Assembly (NCBI GenBank): GCA_048013815.1
Contig: CM106586.1
Location: forward strand, 21,018,001 to 21,082,000
Reading direction: 5' to 3'
Source of the DNA: Setoptus koraiensis
Taxonomy: Eukaryota > Animalia > Arthropoda
DNA length: 64,000 bases
A program made the position numbers and the translations under genes. The notes under the pieces are model-generated. The model saw only the letters and a list, made by a program, of their open reading frames with translations. It did no database searches and was not told where the DNA came from. Of this stretch, positions 4,239 through 18,020 are shown in pieces (within the stretch, counting starts at the first letter, position 1; the number at the start of each line of letters is the position of its first letter).

Positions 4239-6130
4239 GTTGCGGCTGGTGTGTTGTTGGTGTTTGTCGATTGAATTGCAAAGCAAATATCGAGTCAAAT
4301 TAAATCAAATATGTAATTTACACAATATGTATGAACAAAAAATGAAGATGCACTTGGAGATAATGTTGATATAATCACAGTTACACGTTGATTAATTTGA
4401 TCGTGGCGATTGCGAAGCGCTCTAACAAAGTTTAACAGATAATGTTGTTTGGCACACAACAACAGCAACGGCAACAACAACGACTAGACGGGAGACGACG
4501 GCAAACAATATTGAGAACAAACTTTAAAGTGACTGACTGACTGACTGGCAACGGCGGCAGCAGCAGCAGCGCAATACATGAATCACGGCAAAATCTCTGC
4601 CGATCTCTGTCGCTTCAGACGCCCTCTAACTCGCGATTTCAGCCTAACCACAGCAGCAGCAGAAGCCGCCGCCTTGGCAGTGCCTCAGTCTAGGCAGGGC
4701 TAAATGGAGCAAATCTAGACAGCAAGTATGAGTCAACTTGATGCGTGTACATGTCTAAAGACAAATGCAAAGATAATCACACTTTGAGAGTAATTAGAAA
4801 CAGAAAGAAGCAGAGGAGAGGAGAGGCGAGACTGAGGCGAGGGACAAGTGCAGTTCAGTGCTCCCCGGTGGCTAGGGCCTCATATGGAATATCTCTATAA
4901 CAAGTTAGACAGATACAGTGCAAGACCTTTGATATTGTTGCTGCTGCTCTCTTTATTTTATTAATAATCTAAACTATCCAATTCTGCGCTTGCTACGCTG
5001 GCTGGTGTTAAAATGAAAGGACCCCGCACTTTGTGAGTGCATGTCGTCGTTTCGATAATAATAATGGACGCCTTGTTATCATTATCACGACGAATATAAA
5101 GAAGAAAAAGAAGAGATATATATATATAAAGCGCAACATAAGCAGCGCATATAGATAAAAAGAGCGAGGCATAAATTTATATCTCGGCGTATAATGATTC
5201 ATACTGCAAGCTGGCAGTGCGAACTGTGCCTGTCGAGCTTATTTGGCTTCGAGCCTCTATGTCCCTGGCGCTGCTGTCTCGCTGTTGTTCATAGTCCATG
5301 TTTTTTGTTCATGCAACAACAGCCATCATCTACATCCATGCACAGGACACAGAGAAAACATAATGGCAAGACAAGAAACAAAAAGATAAGCGACTACACC
5401 CAGCACATATACTCTATTATATAATTCAAGTTAGTAATAGTGGTGCACAAGAGACAAGGAAGTGATTGTTGGAACCAATAGTTTAATAGAAAAACAAATA
5501 CAAACACAACAACTCATCTCATCACCATCTAGACAGCTAACAGCGAACTAGCGAAAAATCGAGTTAGCTCCGGTCGGTTCGTTGGGGTCTTGGTTCGAAA
5601 AATCATACTGTATTATTATTGTGTGTAGTCACAAAAAATACAAGAACACACACAGACACATATCACACAGATCCACAGTGAGATAAACACATGAGGTGCA
5701 TGTTGCAAACTAGATGATAAAATATATCATTGCAATCATCATCGCATTGCATTAGTTTACAACTGTTAGTCAGAGATGCAAGTTCGTTATTTGATACGCA
5801 TTGACGCTAAACATTGTTGTAAATGTGACGACGGCCACAGCCAACCGCTATAGCCAACTCGCTAACCTTGCCGCATCTTCAACAACTTATATTACGTAAC
5901 TATCGTAAATATTATTATTATTATTATCACTCAAACAACTGTGAACAAGCAACCATCTAGACGTGCTAATATCAATGGGGCGCTTCAAAGCAGAATCGCC
6001 ATCGATTGGAATTCTTGATTGGTGGAGCATGAAGGTTGATGGGGCAACAAATGGCATGCTAGATTGACGAGAGCTTTAGGATATGTCTAAACTTTTGTCC
6101 AATTGGCAACTTACTTTTGGAAACTTTCAA

Positions 6131-6140
6131 ATATATATAC
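6131..6140 (+). promoter_or_regulatory. TATA-like element ~-30 upstream of 5S copy 1 (the same ATATATATAC precedes all four copies)
   Basis: ATATATATAC at -32..-23 from the 5S start at 6163, again at 6631-6640 and in the mirrored copies. Upstream AT-rich elements are known for Pol III 5S genes. Confidence 0.55.
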
Positions 6141-6162
6141 TGCCCGCTGACCTCTCCCTTTC

Positions 6163-6281
6163 GTGTAGGACCATACTACGTTGAAAACACCGCATCTCGT
6201 CAGATCTGCGAAGTTAAGCAACGTCAGGCCCGGTTAGTACTTGGGAGGGAGACCACCTGGGAACTCCGGGTGTCCTACACT
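6163..6281 (+). rRNA. 5S rRNA copy 1
   Basis: GTGTAGGACCATACTACGTTGAAAACACCGCATCTCGTCAGATCTGCGAAGTTAAGCAACGTCAGGCCCGGTTAGTACTTGGGAGGGAGACCACCTGGGAACTCCGGGTGTCCTACAC aligns with animal 5S. It has a perfect 9-bp helix I (GTGTAGGAC/GTCCTACAC), box A and box C-like regions, and T-run terminators downstream. Confidence 0.97.
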
Positions 6282-6291
6282 TTTACTTTTT
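6281..6291 (+). terminator. Pol III terminator (T4 followed by T5) after 5S copy 1; equivalent runs follow the other copies
   Basis: TTTTACTTTTT directly after the 3' end; TTTTGCTTTTT at 6781-6791. Confidence 0.8.
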
Positions 6292-6662
6292 GCTAAAAAT
6301 TCATCAACCAATACAATTCTCATTTCCACTTTTAAAACTGATATATAACTCATTACTGATTGATGATTAATAATCATACGTCAACAACATTTTTTTTTTA
6401 ACACGACAACTACTAATTAAGTATAAACCAGCTCTTCACAAAAAGTCGAGACAAACACTCTCAATGAATTCTTATACTGGAGATTCGGGTTGGACATAGA
6501 GGTCCTTCGAGTGACCAGTGGCATTTGAATTGGCAACCATTCTAAATCATCGGCTACTTGAGTTACTTTTTGAAATATTGAAATATTGAAATTTTGGAAT
6601 ACTGAAATTTTGAGATACTGAAATATCAAAATATATATACGGCGCGCGGACCTCTCTCTTTC

Positions 6663-6781
6663 GTGTAGGACCATACTACGTTGAAAACACCGCATCTCGT
6701 CAGATCTGCGAAGTTAAGCAACGTCAGGCCCGGTTAGTACTTGGGAGGGAGACCACCTGGGAACTCCGGGTGTCCTACACT
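6663..6781 (+). rRNA. 5S rRNA copy 2
   Basis: Identical to copy 1 and exactly 500 bp downstream of it. Confidence 0.97.
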
Positions 6782-7013
6782 TTTGCTTTTTGCTAAAAAG
6801 TCTCACAACATGTAATATCCTCATCTGTAATCATACCAATTATTACAATTGTATCAATCAATGATCAACAATTGTCACCAACATGTTTGCTGACACGGAC
6901 ACCTACTATTTAATTATGCCATCGTGAAAAATTATTATTTTTGTTGATTCTATCACAAGTAGTAAACGGACAAGGGCATGAGATAAATAACAATAACAAT
7001 AATAATAAGAAAT

Positions 7014-8612
7014 TTAAAAGTCAACAACGCGGAACTGGGCCAACATTAGAATGCAAAACGTAAACAATACCATTATTGCTGATATTAATGATGACGTGAC
7101 AGGTATCTGGAGTATTCTGGCCTCCATTCGCAAGCTACTTGTGTACAATAGTAGACTGTCGAGATCGTTTCTATCATTGTCCACCATCATCGATATTGCA
7201 CCACTAATGGGCATATGCATGGATCTCAACTCGTGGCCAATGTTCTTGAGCACCAAACAGGCATTGGTCAATCGGAGCGCCTGTCTCACGTGTGTAAATA
7301 TCAAAATAAACCACAGGGACAGTGTTACAAGCAATACAAATGACGATCTAATTGTTAGCACGGCCCCAGTTGGCGGATGCAACAATGCAATAGAGGATAC
7401 TGTTATGCGACAGATGAGATTTAGCAGCAACAATGATACACCAACAGCTTGATCGTTGTTGAGATACTCAATGAAATTTCGCGATTCCTCTACTCGTTTA
7501 AAAAATTCCTGGATGGGAATGCGACGCTCTCGCATCAACGAGCACAAATTATCTATGTAGGATATGTTGAGTTCACAATGAACCGAATAGGTAGTCACTA
7601 TAGCCGCACAAACAAGATCATTCCAGGACGAACAGGCTATCCTAATTACAATAAATGCCTTATGACCGGGAATGAAGGGCCACTGATAATTGCACATCCA
7701 CACGTGCTGATACACCATCTCGTACCAAAAATAATGAAACAATCGCATCACTAGCGCCAACAACACCCACGTTATACACAACCAAAAGAAATTGCGCAAT
7801 TTTCTCACTAGCTTCCTGTGACATATGAGCCATCCGGCGTTGCGGCTACTCTGCAGAAATACGCGCTCCATCAGCGTTTCCAACCGTTCACTTTCTGGCT
7901 TCCTCAAAAAATATAGCACCATAATATAGGAGGTTAAATGGAATAGGCTCGGTATGAGATGGGCGAATTTGGGCCTCTCGTCGCCCTTCAATATTTCACT
8001 GTGGCAGGCGGCATATTCAAGAAAATGTCCGGCCAATATTATCAATGTTATTATAATGGGGTAACTAAAATTCAACGCTCTTATAATACAATGCGGCTCA
8101 ACAGCGCTAAAGAATAACGGTCGCCACCCCAGTATTGATATTAGTCTCAAATATGGGTATAATATGCGTTTTTTACAACACAACAGTATAACAGATATGG
8201 AGGCCTCGTAGCTGAGATGGTCGACATTGACGTCGTTGATTATGTTGACGGATTGCGACGATCCAGATAAATCCATTATTCTGTAGAAGGCTGCGTTGTT
8301 ATGTATAATTGTTGAATGGCTGCTGTTACTGGTAGTATTATTGTTGTTGTTATTATTGTTACTATTAATATTATTATTATTGTTGTTATTGATATTATTA
8401 TTATTGTTATTACCATTACTATAATGTTGGTTGTTACTAAACTCGTCTTCAGGCGACGACGTTGTTGGCGACAAATAATCACGACCATCTCGATAATGTT
8501 GCCGCTGATCATCAGCATTATCGTTGGCGCTAATTAGTCGAGTTGTCGATAGCAGTTGTATCGATGATCTGCAGCGGGCATTTCTAAACTTGCCGTTTTG
8601 CATGTCTCTCAT
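7014..8612 (-). CDS. Intronless multi-pass membrane protein, gustatory-receptor-like/7TM ion channel superfamily (probably GrlHz/CG3831-like), ~532 aa
   Basis: Long open frame; the first ATG is at 8612, whereas the track starts at a GTG at 8672. An N-terminal poly-Asn tract is followed by ~7 hydrophobic segments (KRILYPYLRLISILGWRP...). The C-terminus EARILQIPVTSSLISAIMVLFTFCILMLAQF resembles the TM7 hhhhQF ending of Gr-type proteins. The family call is from memory, not a search. Confidence 0.75.
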   Translation of the reverse strand: MRDMQNGKFRNARCRSSIQLLSTTRLISANDNADDQRQHYRDGRDYLSPTTSSPEDEFSNNQHYSNGNNNNNNINNNNNNNINSNNNNNNNNTTSNSSHSTIIHNNAAFYRIMDLSGSSQSVNIINDVNVDHLSYEASISVILLCCKKRILYPYLRLISILGWRPLFFSAVEPHCIIRALNFSYPIIITLIILAGHFLEYAACHSEILKGDERPKFAHLIPSLFHLTSYIMVLYFLRKPESERLETLMERVFLQSSRNAGWLICHRKLVRKLRNFFWLCITWVLLALVMRLFHYFWYEMVYQHVWMCNYQWPFIPGHKAFIVIRIACSSWNDLVCAAIVTTYSVHCELNISYIDNLCSLMRERRIPIQEFFKRVEESRNFIEYLNNDQAVGVSLLLLNLICRITVSSIALLHPPTGAVLTIRSSFVLLVTLSLWFILIFTHVRQALRLTNACLVLKNIGHELRSMHMPISGAISMMVDNDRNDLDSLLLYTSSLRMEARILQIPVTSSLISAIMVLFTFCILMLAQFRVVDF

Positions 8613-8663
8613 GATCTTATGCAATGCCTTCAAACCTTTTATCTTGGTCGCAAAAAATACTAC

Positions 8664-8709
8664 TTGTCTCACTACTCCGTTTTTTGTCTCACTACTCCGT
8701 TTTTTGTCT
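8664..8709. repeat. 20-bp tandem duplication (TTGTCTCACTACTCCGTTTT x2 plus partial)
   Basis: Seen directly, ~50 bp upstream of the 7TM gene ATG. Confidence 0.9.
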
Positions 8710-9639
8710 GCCTAACAAGTTACTGTGATTTGGACACATTGCCAGCACACATTCGAATAATAATTGAATAGCGATTCCTTGTAGCAAGTTGTAACGAAGC
8801 TCTGCATCAATTCGCGGAATTGTTCCCGAGTTTAGTGTGATCATCGTCAGTTGTGTATTGTTATACACAGTGACAAACAAAAAAGCAAGCAACATCATTC
8901 ATCAGGTGAACTCTCTATAATTAGATAATAATTTGTGAACAGTATTACACAATGTTGTGTTTGTCAGCGACAGAGAAACGAGAGATTTTAGCGAATCGAT
9001 TTGATCGCATTCATTTGTTCAGATAATCGCTGCAGAGATAGTTGGCTGCCGCCAGTGAAAACTGACAACAACTTTGCCTGGCCAATGTTGCAACAGGTTT
9101 GCGACAATAATCAACATACACAGATATAGACTGTCATATGCGCTGCGTCAAGATAATGAGATGTTGAGATTATCCTTTCGCCTCGGATTGCTATCATCTC
9201 ATGAATAATAGAATCATGATGGCGATATTATTATCTCTCTCGATGGTCGTTCGAGTCCTTTGAGGGCATAACAAATCACTTTGTGTTTGGTTGCCATCAC
9301 TTTCGTTTGTGCAGCTATTATCGCCTCGACCATTATGTAACGAACAACATCAGACCAACAAATAGTCGTTCAGCCGGAACCACAAAAAGTTCATCTGAAA
9401 AGGTGAAAAGCCTGCCTCGCATAGATGGTGAGTTAATCTCACCAATGAGTTAATCTCATAGATGAGAGTATAGTGTTGAATGAGTGGGCGAGACACGATA
9501 ACTGTTTGTCGCACCTCCCAAAGATAAGTAAAAGTTTAATCATTATCATTACACGTGATTGTTATTAATATCACTCTTTTCATATCATCATTGCAAATGA
9601 GAATTTTACTTGTTGTGAGGCTTTTTAGCAAAAAGCAAA

Positions 9640-9758
9640 AGTGTAGGACACCCGGAGTTCCCAGGTGGTCTCCCTCCCAAGTACTAACCGGGCCTGACGT
9701 TGCTTAACTTCGCAGATCTGACGAGATGCGGTGTTTTCAACGTAGTATGGTCCTACAC
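9640..9758 (-). rRNA. 5S rRNA copy 3 (mirror of copy 2)
   Basis: Its reverse complement is identical to copies 1 and 2, and its flanks match copy 2. Confidence 0.97.
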
Positions 9759-10140
9759 GAAAGAGAGAGGTCCGCGCGCCGTATATATATTTTGATATTT
9801 CAGTATCTCAAAATTTCAGTATTCCAAAATTTCAATATTTCAAAATTTCAAAAAGTAACTCAAGTAGCCGATGATTTAGAATGGTTGCCAATTCAAAATG
9901 CCACTGGTCACTCGAATGACCTCTATGTCCAACCAGAATCTCCGGTATAAGAATTCATTGAGAGTGTTTGTCTCGACTTTTTGTGGATAGCTGGTTTATA
10001 CTTAATTAGTAGTTGTAGTGCTAAAAAAAACATGTTGTTGACGTATGATTATTAATCATCAATCAGTAATGAGTTATATATCAGTTTTAAAAGTGGAAAT
10101 GAGAATTGTATTGGTTGATGAATTTTTAGCAAAAAGTAAA

Positions 10141-10259
10141 AGTGTAGGACACCCGGAGTTCCCAGGTGGTCTCCCTCCCAAGTACTAACCGGGCCTGACG
10201 TTGCTTAACTTCGCAGATCTGACGAGATGCGGTGTTTTCAACGTAGTATGGTCCTACAC
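10141..10259 (-). rRNA. 5S rRNA copy 4 (mirror of copy 1)
   Basis: Its reverse complement is identical to copies 1 and 2, and its upstream flank matches copy 1 (TGCCCGCTGACCTCTCCCTTTC). Confidence 0.97.
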
Positions 10260-10729
10260 GAAAGGGAGAGGTCAGCGGGCAGTATATATATTTGAAAGTT
10301 TCCAAAAGTAAGTTGCCAATGGTTGAGACACAGCCTATAGCTCTCGTCAACCCAAGATGTCATTACTATTTGGACTCATTCGCATTTGGATAAATTCAAT
10401 TGTAAATCTCTGATACGAGATTCTGTATTGATGGTATTTGTTTCAACTTTTTGTGACTTCTGATTTAGACTGTATTCAACCATATTTAGTTGGAGCAAAT
10501 CAGAGCAAGGACGCATCAATGATCAGTCATTGTCACGATTTGGACAGCGACGATTGATTCTTTAATTGGTTTCATTGGGTGCACTTGTATGGATAGTGTA
10601 CTCGTATCAATTACAATATATCGGCCGCGCTAGTATTATATATATATATGTACCCATGATAACAATATTTCGGTACTTGTCGGCGTGAAACTACAATAGT
10701 TTTTTGTCCTTTATCCGACGATCTCTGTC

Positions 10730-13038
10730 CTACTCAACTGAGGCCGTAGTGGTGGTGACATCCTCTTTTGCAGCATCTGTCGCTTCTGGTCCGTTAGTTG
10801 TGGAGCTGCCTGACTCATTTTGTGTTGTTCCGCTGTTGTCCGGGCGTCGAGTTGATGCAGAATCGTTCTTGTCTGGATTTTTGTTTTTCGGTTCATTATT
10901 ATCATTGTTGTGGCGACGAGCCCATGGTGATACATTGTGATAAAAGTCTCTCACCGATACTTGAACATCCGATAATGAATCCCGGAATCCTTGGGGCACG
11001 TGCTCACCAATGTTGATGTTCTGAAAGAAATTCCTAAATCTATCTGCGAATGGAACCCGTTGCTGCTGCTGCTGTAACTGTTGTTGATTTTGTATAACAT
11101 TGTATACAGTGTCAGCGTCACGTTGCAATCTGGATATTTCCGTGATTTTTCCGTCGATCTCATTGACCGATTGGTCGTTAGCGCCACTGGGCTCACTTCC
11201 TTCTTTTTCCACTTTTTGTCTCGTAACAATCGACTCCTGTGCAGCACCAACTAAACCAAATCCTGGCCCGGCTGGACCGTACAATGGTGGTGGAGCCACT
11301 GCTACAGGTTGTTGTTGTGGATTCAAAACGGCGCGAACATTGCCAAGAGTAGATTGCAACGAATCGGTAAGACCGTGCCACATTCTGTTGAGGTCGCGTT
11401 GCATATTTATAACATTAGATTGGATTTTGGCGCCCACACTATTCAAGTCGTTCTGTTTAGACTGATCTGGAGAGTTTTTGCCAGTTGTAGAGTCCGCAAC
11501 AGGATCCGTTAGAGTGTAGAGCGGATTGTTGACATCAATGTTATTGAGCAAATTATCAATGGAGGCCGACGATGCCTGGCCACTGTCTTGTCGGCCGCCT
11601 GCAGGCAGGAAGCCCCCGTAAGCAGGCGCTTGGTGTGGCGAACTTACAACACCGTTATGGGTGAGGTCTTGCCAAACTCGGGAGATTTTATTTTGCACTT
11701 TGGCCATCTGAGGCTGTACTTGGTTGTGCCAGAACTCAACAACAGAGGCGCCTAAACCGCGTTGATTGTTTCTATTTTCGTTGTTGCCGTTGTTGTTGTC
11801 CAATGTTGCTTGTCGCCCATTCAATTGACCGGTTGGATCAATATCATGAAAATTTTCAGCACCAGGCCCCGGTCCAAAGCCTAATGAGTGCTGGATGCGA
11901 TCAAAAAAGGTGCCAAATGCATTTGGTGGTGGCTGGTTCGGGTGAGCCGACGGAAATATGGGCCCATCGATTGGGGGCGAGAATAGATCACGATTGTCAG
12001 CGTTTGATCTGCTAGTGATGCTCGCTTGACTTGCCAAGGCGGTCAAATTGGCGGCGGTGCCGTTGTTTGACACTTGTTTCCAGAATCTGTTTAAATTATC
12101 TTGAGCGTCGCTTAGCCTGGCCACCATGGTCTTAAAGAATGCCGGCACTTGTTGGGCGATTCTTTGTTGAACGGGATTGCTGCTATTCGACACCTCTTGT
12201 CGCATTCTGTCCTGTAATAAGTTCAATTGTTGCTGAACAGTGGAATTCCACATGTTAGATAGATTGCTAAATACTGAATGCATTCCGCGATTCAATTGTT
12301 GCAATACAGTTGCGTTATTCAACGCTCGCATTTGTTCCTGCTCGAGTCCATTGCCGCCTTGCTGTTGTTGTTGCTGTTGCGATTCCGAGCGAGTCTCCAG
12401 TGAATCATTCTTTTTGTTGCCAACACCAAACATTGACAATAGCCTGCTGCCTAGATCATTGATAAATTTTGCTGGACGATCGGAACTTATCTGCTGATTG
12501 TCAGCCGGAATGAATGGCACTGGCTGGGGTCCGCCATTCATCGGATCAAATGGTGGTGATTGGTGGGGACCGGGAGACAAGTTCGGATACAACCGCTGAG
12601 GTTGATGGCTCAAAGCTGGATTATGCTGCGAGAAAGGTGGTAAGAATGCCCCCTGTGGCACCAATTGAGGGTAGAGGGCTTGGTTGGGTGGGGGTCCGTA
12701 GGGCATGAAATTCTGTCCATTGCCGCTAGGTTGTGTAGCCTGAGGGTTTGTGGGACCATTGCTCGATGGGTTGTTGTTGCTGCTTTCCTCATTGGCTTGT
12801 CTCTTGGTTAGAATTTTACTTTCCAAAATTGATCCTATAATTATTCATGAGCATAAGTTAAAATAAGAATATTAATTGTGTTCGTTGTGAAAAGTTTACC
12901 TGCAGCGATACCGTTGATAGGTTGTATATTACATATATAAATTGTTCACTCACTTTGTGATGCCAATGAATAGGACAATTGTCCAAACAGAAGTCCTGCC
13001 AGAACAATCGGAATGATTGCTCTTGTTTTTTGTTTCAT
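10730..13038 (-). CDS. Secreted Q/N/P/G-rich protein of unknown family, 729 aa, 2 exons
   Basis: Exon 1 (13038-12954) encodes a signal-peptide-like MKQKTRAIIPIVLAGLLFGQLSYSLASQ and ends at A|GTGAGT. Exon 2 (12834-10730) starts after TTATAG|. The phase-1 junction keeps the frame (2190 nt total). Confidence 0.85.
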
Positions 13039-16396: not shown

Positions 16397-17248
16397 ATGT
16401 CAAGGCTAGTCAGTGCCACCAAAGATGTCGTCAAGGTGCTTGCTTCCCGTGGTTTTCTCGCCGACCAAATAGATATATTGCTGCCACGCTTGCATCCGGG
16501 TCTCACTGCTCAACCGAAATTGCTCGGCCAGGTTATTGACGCTTGGAATAGAGAAATGACAAAACTAACTTCGCAGCGAGCATCTGAAGACAACCCATTC
16601 ATTGTAGCCACTGCTAGCGCACCAGACTCTCTGGATCTTGGTTTCAATATAGACATGAATATGATATTAGCTGAAAGGGAGCCCAACTTACTCAATATTC
16701 ACCCAGACAAGATAGCAGTTAGAAAAGAAAAACTACTCAATCTAGGTATAGTATACAGTGCCGGAGAATTGTGGAAGTTGTTATATTTTGCACCTGCTGG
16801 ATTTTTTCTACAAGATTGGACAGAACTAGTTAAGAAATTCTACTACATTGAACACAATATTCTCAGTTGGTTGTACGATAAACATGAGCGTAAGGCGTTG
16901 AAAACCCATCCTATGGTGTCCAATGCCTTGGTTTCGGAGAAGTCATTCGATCATATCAGAGCTAGGTTCTTATTTGCCCAGAGGACCGGATACAAGACTC
17001 TTGTAAACAATCTCAAGGTGGAGTCATCTTCCAATCTAATAGGTTTGAGGGAGCTAATATTGTATGATACCGATGATTACCTTCGAAGGATAGCCCCGAA
17101 CGTCAAATTGGAGGAATATAATTGCTTTGTAGATCTTATAAAGAATAGTCGAGAACGAGAAAGCAACGACGATGCCAAAATTTATGAGCAGTTGGCTGAG
17201 TTAGAAAATATCAGATATGAAAAAAATAAAGGAACTGAGAGACAGTAA
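16397..17248 (+). CDS. MTERF4: Mitochondrial transcription termination factor family protein, MTERF4-like, 283 aa, intronless
   Basis: mTERF-like helical repeats. The C-terminal SFDHIRARFLFAQRTG and DTDDYLRRIAPNVKLEEYNCFVDL resemble MTERF4. Confidence 0.7.
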   Translation: MSRLVSATKDVVKVLASRGFLADQIDILLPRLHPGLTAQPKLLGQVIDAWNREMTKLTSQRASEDNPFIVATASAPDSLDLGFNIDMNMILAEREPNLLNIHPDKIAVRKEKLLNLGIVYSAGELWKLLYFAPAGFFLQDWTELVKKFYYIEHNILSWLYDKHERKALKTHPMVSNALVSEKSFDHIRARFLFAQRTGYKTLVNNLKVESSSNLIGLRELILYDTDDYLRRIAPNVKLEEYNCFVDLIKNSRERESNDDAKIYEQLAELENIRYEKNKGTERQ

Positions 17249-17576: not shown

Positions 17577-18020
17577 ATGAGCGCATCACTGGAGAGTGGC
17601 CTGGACAATCTAGCCATTAGTGTTCAATATTGTGATCAATGCACATTGCCACCCGAATATTGTGAATTTACCAAGTGCGCGGAGAATGCCGATCCTGACC
17701 ACAAGAGACAGACCAGAGGAGGCAAAGCACAAGGGCCCAAGGTAAAAAAACAAGCCGAAAAGAAGATGGAAGTGTTCAGATCTAATAGAGGCAAGAAGAA
17801 ATTCGTTACTGTTGTAGTCGGTATGTCTACCTTTGGCGTCGATCTTAAGGAGGCCTCAAAATTTTTCTCAAAGAAATTCGCCTGCAGCAGCAGTGTCACA
17901 GGCACCGACGAAATAGTTGTTCAAGGAGATGTCAAGGACGAACTCATCGATATAATCTCAGAGAAATTTCCAGAAATAGATTCTGACCTCATAGAAGACG
18001 GTGGGGATCAAAAGAGATGA
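17577..18020 (+). CDS. DENR: Density-regulated protein (SUI1 domain, translation re-initiation factor), 147 aa, intronless
   Basis: YCDQCTLPPEYCEF zinc motif, KRQTRGGK, and KKKFVTVVVGMSTFGVDLKEASKFFSKKFACSSSVTGTDEIVVQGDV (SUI1 domain). Confidence 0.95.
   Translation: MSASLESGLDNLAISVQYCDQCTLPPEYCEFTKCAENADPDHKRQTRGGKAQGPKVKKQAEKKMEVFRSNRGKKKFVTVVVGMSTFGVDLKEASKFFSKKFACSSSVTGTDEIVVQGDVKDELIDIISEKFPEIDSDLIEDGGDQKR

Follow-up and report, generated by a model that had tools for sequence, protein, structure and literature searches.

In Oikopleura dioica, the genes for 5S ribosomal RNA (rRNA) are dispersed, are linked to the spliced-leader gene, and lie in inverted repeats (22 of the 27 copies in the Okinawa assembly; PMC8008620). 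Inverted blocks of 5S genes were also found in pike (Esox), in 4% of long reads, and the 286 long reads that were sampled held about 7,800 5S genes (PMC5437419). A third system with which our locus can be compared is the ampliconic palindromes of mammalian sex chromosomes, which are maintained by gene conversion between their arms. Here we describe a small 5S palindrome in the mite Setoptus koraiensis. It lies in a stretch of 64,000 nucleotides (C2:21,018,001-21,082,000), which we will call the window. Four 5S genes, two on each strand, bracket a single gene that encodes a protein with seven-transmembrane (7TM) architecture. We think it likely that this is a real, lineage-specific palindrome, in which a 5S dimer is present twice in mirror image and is kept uniform by gene conversion, and that the 7TM gene is a bystander.

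The mite resembles Oikopleura in several respects. Both are animals with compact genomes, both have 5S genes that are scattered over the chromosomes, and in both, most of these genes are in inverted arrangements (13 of 14 copies in the mite). But the mite has fewer 5S genes, and the palindrome in the window has a 2.75-kb protein-coding core. Also, the 5S genes of the window are not linked to a spliced-leader gene or to another small-RNA gene: at E <= 1, comparison to Rfam gave nothing beyond noise for other RNA families, such as spliced-leader RNA or small nuclear RNAs, in positions 5800-10600. The mite and pike both have 5S units in inverted blocks, but in pike these blocks are within enormous arrays and do not make up the whole of a minimal set of genes. 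The mammalian palindromes are similar in that inverted arms of high identity surround a unique spacer. They differ in scale and in content, as their arms span tens to hundreds of kilobases and carry testis-expressed families, while the mite's arms are under 1 kb and carry genes of the RNA polymerase III (Pol III) class. In the mite's palindrome, the arms are most alike at a distance from their boundaries, and at another palindrome in the same genome (locus L026, see below), the mirrored neighbour genes are far more diverged than the arms are. For the mite, we infer conversion from a single assembly.

The initial annotation of the window held that this arrangement was undescribed. Given the inverted repeats of O. 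dioica (PMC8008620), this is too strong. The locus is best filed as a further example, from a new animal lineage, of the known dispersed and inverted organisation of 5S genes, and not as a new kind of cassette. In the literature on 5S palindromes in mites, we found nothing specific.

We called 5S genes with the covariance model RF00001 from Rfam (gathering score 38 bits), and we obtained the coordinates of the arms from a repeat finder and from pairwise alignment of the arms (Table 1). All four 5S genes in the window are full-length (119 nt), with scores of 108.2 bits each, and a DNA search shows that they are 100% identical to each other. Two genes on the forward strand are followed by the unique core and then by two genes on the reverse strand. 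The initial annotation had described this order, the mirror pairing of copy 1 with copy 4 and of copy 2 with copy 3, and the identity of all four genes, and Rfam, the repeat finder, the alignment of the arms, and the DNA search bear it out. The arms are somewhat shorter than it had estimated (~733 bp instead of ~770 bp). They comprise two pairs of inverted repeats: 6102-6526 with 9896-10320 (98% identity), and 6524-6834 with 9587-9897 (97% identity). Within each arm, the 5S genes have a tandem period of 500 or 501 bp.

Between -43 and +21, the flanks of copies 1 and 2 are 95% alike. Copy 1 has an AT-rich, TATA-like box at 6129-6140, and its T-run terminators occupy 6281-6284 and 6287-6291. Apart from the 5S genes, we found neither tRNA genes nor other Pol III genes in the window.

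The core is also as the initial annotation had portrayed it (~2.75 kb and unique, with a single intronless gene and its upstream region). It contains one long open reading frame (ORF), which runs from 7014 to 8672 on the reverse strand with its first ATG at 8612, and ~0.9 kb of upstream DNA. The non-coding part of the core (8673-9586) and the spacer of the arms are both single-copy in the genome. When we compared the two halves of the core for mirror symmetry, only simple repeats (poly-Asn and AT-rich sequence) matched.

Table 1. Features of the 5S palindrome, nearby genes in the window, and 5S loci in the genome. Positions are in the window unless a contig (C1 or C2) is given.
Feature	Position	Strand	Evidence or remark
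5S rRNA gene, copy 1 (outer left)	6163..6281	+	Rfam RF00001, 108.2 bits, model positions 1-120
5S rRNA gene, copy 2 (inner left)	6663..6781	+	Rfam, 108.2 bits; 100% identical to copy 1
5S rRNA gene, copy 3 (inner right; mirrors copy 2)	9640..9758	-	Rfam, repeat finder, arm alignment
5S rRNA gene, copy 4 (outer right; mirrors copy 1)	10141..10259	-	Rfam, repeat finder, arm alignment
Left arm of palindrome: 5S dimer and 381-bp spacer	6102..6834	.	Inverted repeats, 97-98%
Right arm of palindrome	9587..10320	.	Repeat finder, arm alignment
Decayed outer extension of left arm; ~75% identity to 10321-10364 and one 8-bp indel	6050..6101	.	Arm alignment, shuffle test
Decayed outer extension of right arm	10321..10364	.	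Arm alignment, shuffle test
Unique core without residual mirror symmetry, 2752 bp	6835..9586	.	
Intronless gene; conserved protein with a 7TM fold like that of gustatory or odorant receptors (7TMIC)	7014..8612	-	ORF, homologues, AlphaFold2, Foldseek
Gene A, no Pfam family	16397..17248	+	Homologue directly flanks the 7TM gene in L029
DENR (SUI1 domain)	17577..18020	+	Homologue directly flanks the 7TM gene in L029
5S locus: head-to-head pair	C1:3.487 Mb		
5S locus: five genes, + - + - -	C1:10.09 Mb		
5S locus: singleton	C1:14.45 Mb		
5S locus: head-to-head pair	C1:17.96 Mb		
5S locus: + + - - set	C2, the window		

The history of the palindrome may be reflected in the differences between its arms. 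Of the 17 positions at which the arms differ, none is in 6102-6390 or 6578-6800, and each of these blocks holds one 5S gene. In the middle of the spacer (6391-6577) there are 10 differences (~5%), and at the inner edge (6801-6832) there are 7 differences in the last 32 bp (~22%). In other words, the 512 bp around the two 5S genes have no differences and all 17 are elsewhere. Past the outer edge, similarity of about 75-80% continues for ~45-50 bp, to 6050 on the left and 10364 on the right (z = 9.4; none of 200 dinucleotide shuffles reached the score). Inward from the inner edge, there is no significant extension of the similarity. Overall, identity is ~75-78% at both edges of the arms, as compared to 95-100% in their interior.

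Because the differences avoid the 5S genes and both edges of the arms decay, this pattern suggests an older duplication whose gene-proximal parts would have been renewed repeatedly by conversion between the arms. A single recent duplication would fit the pattern less well. In a post hoc permutation test, we placed the differences at random over the non-genic positions of the arms, and flanks that were as free of differences as the observed ones were reached in 65 of 200,000 permutations.

The second 5S palindrome, at C1:10094077-10097981 (L026:1077-4981), serves as an internal control. Its 5S-proximal arms are 98-100% identical. It encloses two paralogous genes in divergent orientation, which encode orphan secreted proteins and which are only 76% identical at the nucleotide level and 49% identical at the amino-acid level. 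A gene for a GH18 chitinase adjoins the palindrome. The mirror duplication at this locus appears to be old, while its 5S ends look new, as would be expected if conversion between the arms is seeded at the 5S genes. The genes that are caught between 5S genes at this locus and in the window are unrelated to each other, and the other 5S pairs in the genome enclose either nothing or unrelated genes.

The initial annotation called for a genome-wide count of 5S genes. The assembly comprises two contigs (C1 and C2) and 48.76 Mb. By searching all of it with the 119-nt gene, we found exactly 14 copies, all of which are 100% identical. These are spread over five dispersed loci on both contigs (Table 1), and none of the loci is a tandem array: the longest run of 5S genes on the same strand is two genes. 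Thirteen of the 14 copies have an oppositely oriented partner within 4.3 kb.

All of the loci have in common only the gene itself and ~14 nt of terminator (tttRctttttgct). The Pol III terminator motif TTTT..TTTTT directly follows all 14 copies. The upstream flanks are specific to each locus, and each of these flanks has an AT-rich box near -30. Because the loci share so little beyond the gene, the identity of the 5S genes is independent of the palindromes. It requires either strong constraint or conversion that is confined to the gene.

If the census stands up to read depth, then this would be among the smallest 5S complements known in an animal, and it would be the second independent case, after Oikopleura, of a compact animal genome with scattered inverted pairs of 5S genes. 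It would also be a small and tractable system for studying concerted evolution without arrays.

To see whether the 5S bracket accompanies the 7TM gene in other mites, we scanned metagenomes with an alignment of the 7TM family, and we identified clear relatives at three loci, all in plant metagenomes. Two of these, L029 and L030, are apparently from the same species (60% identity). The third locus, L031, has 72% identity. There are no 5S genes within 10 kb of the 7TM orthologue, on either side, in L029 or in L031. In L030, there are none in the 3 kb on one side or in the 1.5 kb on the other.

The 7TM gene of L029 and L030 lies directly between homologues of DENR (80% identical to 17577-18020 of the window) and of gene A. 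In the window, gene A and DENR are adjacent to each other, and they lie 8-9 kb to the right of the palindrome. A protein model from another mite species, P0004, begins with residues 1-35 of DENR, to which the 7TM protein is fused. As this model is just 76% identical to the protein from L029, it is from a different species. The two species differ in orientation as well: for P0004, exon 1 of DENR is upstream of the 7TM gene and on the same strand, and in L029, DENR is on the opposite strand. In L031, the neighbour of the 7TM gene is a diphthamide synthase gene, whose counterpart in this genome is 2.6 Mb away.

Since the adjacency to DENR is seen in two other species, it is probably the older state. 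Since there is no 5S gene near the orthologue in two related species, and since DENR is adjacent to the 7TM gene in one of these and in a third species, the 5S bracket is, as judged by these comparisons, specific to the lineage of the window or at most to its close relatives. In the synteny comparison to related mites that the initial annotation had recommended, the bracket is thus absent from both of these species.

The relatives also differ in the structure of the 7TM gene. L029, L031, and P0004 have a frame break or a short intron near residue 401, which is absent from the gene in the window and from P0001, its closest relative. The model for P0004 reads through this intron as an in-frame insert of ~31 residues. 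We compared the two parts of the relatives' gene one at a time.

What does the enclosed gene encode? The N-terminal ~150 residues of the protein are of low complexity (poly-Asn), and there are about seven to eight hydrophobic segments. Neither the protein nor any of 15 homologues matched the Pfam families 7tm_7, 7tm_6, or Trehalose_recp at E <= 1. We dropped the attempt to assign the protein to a Pfam family, as there was only sub-threshold noise such as HTH_26.

Homologues were found by a word-based protein search. The closest relative, P0001, is 73% identical overall and 91% identical in the membrane domain; conservation is much lower in the N-terminus. Several unnamed proteins are 57-69% identical. 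Proteins from an oribatid mite (Medioppia) and from a scorpion (Centruroides) are 33% identical, and both of these are uncharacterised in their source databases.

We used AlphaFold2 with an alignment of the homologues to model residues 150-552, which gave a predicted local distance difference test score (pLDDT) of 72 and a predicted template modelling score (pTM) of 0.74. When we compared the model to the PDB with Foldseek, the top 20 matches were all to insect odorant receptors (ORs), Orco, or gustatory receptors (GRs) such as BmGr9, Gr64a, and Gr43a, with probability 1.0 and template modelling (TM) scores of 0.45-0.54. After these, the TM scores fall to ~0.15. Thus, the core fold that is predicted for the protein superposes on the structures of OR, Orco, and GR proteins at a TM score of ~0.5. 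Look-alikes from a protein language model (ESM Atlas) were in the OR, 7tm_7, DUF267, and plant DUF3537 clusters. All four of these families have been grouped together as 7TM ion channels (7TMICs; PMC9998090).

The C-terminus of the window's protein is TFCILMLAQF, in which the Q is nearly invariant across the family. The seventh transmembrane segment of GRs has the C-terminal motif TYhhhhhQF. The protein in the window has one more residue between TF and QF than the motif does.

The initial annotation had described this gene as chemoreceptor-like. The structural model supports this at the level of fold and superfamily, since the strongest Foldseek matches were to ORs and GRs only, but the lack of a match to 7tm_6 or 7tm_7 means that the Pfam families do not. 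The protein also differs from insect GRs and ORs in being well conserved as far as a scorpion and in showing no expansion. This genome has one copy of the family and one partial paralogue. Given this and the conservation in a scorpion, the gene is not part of a fast-expanding, lineage-specific family of receptors here.

The partial paralogue is at C1:5274807-5275386 (L016/L017). It is 52% identical over residues 270-469, it has stops nearby, and there is no 5S gene near it. This may be a pseudogene, or else a copy that evolves fast. Two repeats in or near the gene in the window are also worth recording. A long poly-Asn tract (AAT/AAC) at 8280-8440 on the reverse strand corresponds to residues ~85-115 of the protein, and a 20-nt unit, gacaaaaaacggagtagtga, is perfectly duplicated in tandem at 8669-8708 on the reverse strand, ~60 nt upstream of the first ATG.

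With these results in hand, we can consider how the locus arose and whether the arrangement matters. We propose that the palindrome originated when a 5S dimer was duplicated locally in inverted orientation, or when part of a mini-array of four genes was inverted; these two origins are not separable from one assembly. The event would have occurred in a region where the 7TM gene had left its older neighbours, DENR and gene A. Recurrent conversion from arm to arm, seeded at the 5S genes, would then hold the arms identical near the genes, with drift at the edges and in the middle of the spacer. The four genes would simply be 4 of the 14 5S genes in the genome that are predicted to be working and to be transcribed by Pol III, and the conserved GR-like gene would be a bystander in the core. 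The bracket itself appears to have no function of its own.

Several points weigh against this interpretation. If the differences at the inner edge are left out of the permutation test, then the observed pattern is reached in 2,013 of 200,000 permutations (~1%), which is only moderately significant. Selection on the promoter and terminator flanks may be partly behind the clustering of the differences. More broadly, the 5S genes are identical across loci whose flanks are unrelated, so palindromes are needless for explaining that identity. The bracket may be conserved within the genus. Finally, the assembly may be collapsed, or the population may contain a second orientation of the core.

The possibility that the locus is an assembly artefact, or the remnant of a larger 5S array that was collapsed during assembly, deserves attention because 14 is a very low number of 5S genes for an animal and because the assembly of a related mite collapsed its 45S rDNA array (bioRxiv 10.1101/2024.05.17.594625). 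But the locus is deep inside a contig of 24.5 Mb, its tandem copies have different spacers, and comparable small inverted structures are present at four other loci. Also, a perfect artefactual fold-back would not have 17 differences between its arms and a unique core. We consider an artefact to be improbable. A biological alternative to our interpretation, which is less far-fetched but still unlikely, is that the architecture was selected: in a streamlined genome, dispersed palindromes would have replaced the tandem 5S array, and their inverted arms would allow correction within the chromosome without the loss of copies that direct repeats can suffer. The lack of any 5S array, the inverted arrangement of 13 of the 14 copies, the identity of the arms around the 5S genes, and the same habit in another compact animal genome, that of Oikopleura (PMC8008620), are all as this idea predicts. 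On the other hand, the genes are also identical across loci that have no flanks in common, and this includes the singleton, so palindromes are not required for 5S identity. The arrangement varies by locus as well (head-to-head, tail-to-tail, or mixed), as haphazard rearrangement would predict, and with just five clusters, the pattern of orientations is not statistically compelling. The initial annotation's suggestion of a self-correcting palindrome in place of a tandem array therefore survives in part: there is no tandem array, and the pattern of identity in the arms fits with correction from arm to arm, but the genes do not need palindromes to stay identical. A more general version of the idea is that extreme streamlining of animal genomes repeatedly turns the 5S array into a few dispersed mini-palindromes, independently in the mite and in Oikopleura, and that concerted evolution is then carried out by inverted arms instead of by tandem repetition. 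Pol III genes might even seed palindromes, for example by fork stalling and template switching at 5S genes. We regard this as speculative, and we doubt that it is correct.

The three remaining alternatives seem very unlikely to us. In yeasts and mammals, barriers can be formed by tRNA genes (tDNAs) and by TFIIIC sites, and the initial annotation had raised the prospect of a Pol III-insulated cassette, in which 5S pairs bound by TFIIIA and TFIIIC would serve as chromatin barriers and so keep the expression of the receptor-like gene separate. The geometry, with Pol III genes on both sides, is what speaks for this. But the flanking arrangement is not conserved with the gene in L029/L030 or L031 (no 5S gene is within 10 kb of the orthologue in the two related species), the window contains neither tRNA genes nor further Pol III genes, and the other 5S pairs, including those of the second palindrome, enclose nothing or unrelated genes. 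It had also been suggested that recombination between the arms could flip the receptor gene and act as a switch. With a length of 733 bp and 97-98% identity, the inverted arms are indeed sufficient as a substrate for inversion. Nevertheless, since the core contains both the ORF and its ~0.9-kb upstream region, and since each arm mirrors the other, the gene would have the same immediate surroundings in either orientation, and inversion would change nothing there. Moreover, the assembly shows a single orientation of the core, and we found no recombinase among the ORFs of at least 120 amino acids that we scanned at 15-21 kb. The last alternative involves mobility or retroposition: the locus could be a composite element whose terminal inverted repeats bear the 5S genes, or a tail-to-tail 5S palindrome could have been there already when an intronless retrocopy of the 7TM gene inserted into its centre. 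A retrocopy would explain why the gene is intronless here, given the frame break or short intron in L029, L031, and P0004, and why it has moved relative to DENR and gene A. Yet there is no transposase, there are no sharp ends, and there is no remnant of a poly(A) tail; the 7TM gene is the only long ORF in the core. (The ends of the arms fade gradually, so no target-site duplication can be read.) The arms, the spacer, and the core are all single-copy. We rejected a multicopy mobile element on these grounds, as both the spacer and the non-coding DNA of the core occur once in the genome. As to the retrocopy, the gene now lies only ~9 kb away from its former neighbours, in favour of a local rearrangement of DNA, and the partial paralogue on C1 matches without interruption across the position of residue 401, so the loss of the intron need not mark a retrocopy. 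Together with the missing poly(A) remnant, this makes local rearrangement and ordinary intron loss the more likely history of the 7TM gene.

Besides the 5S genes, we searched the assembly for 18S rRNA. The matches were fragmentary and scattered, without a clean array (for example, C2:937813-939263, C2:953108-953943, and C1:3252992-3253622). This may be an effect of a stricter search, or the rDNA may have been collapsed or fragmented in the assembly.

Two other features of the window lie outside of the palindrome. Directly to its right is an ORF of 698 amino acids (10730-12826, reverse strand) that is rich in Gln, Asn, and Pro and has no Pfam family. Farther to the right, at 24000-52000, where there are few long ORFs, the G+C content climbs from about 38-42% to 49-59% over ~28 kb and then drops.

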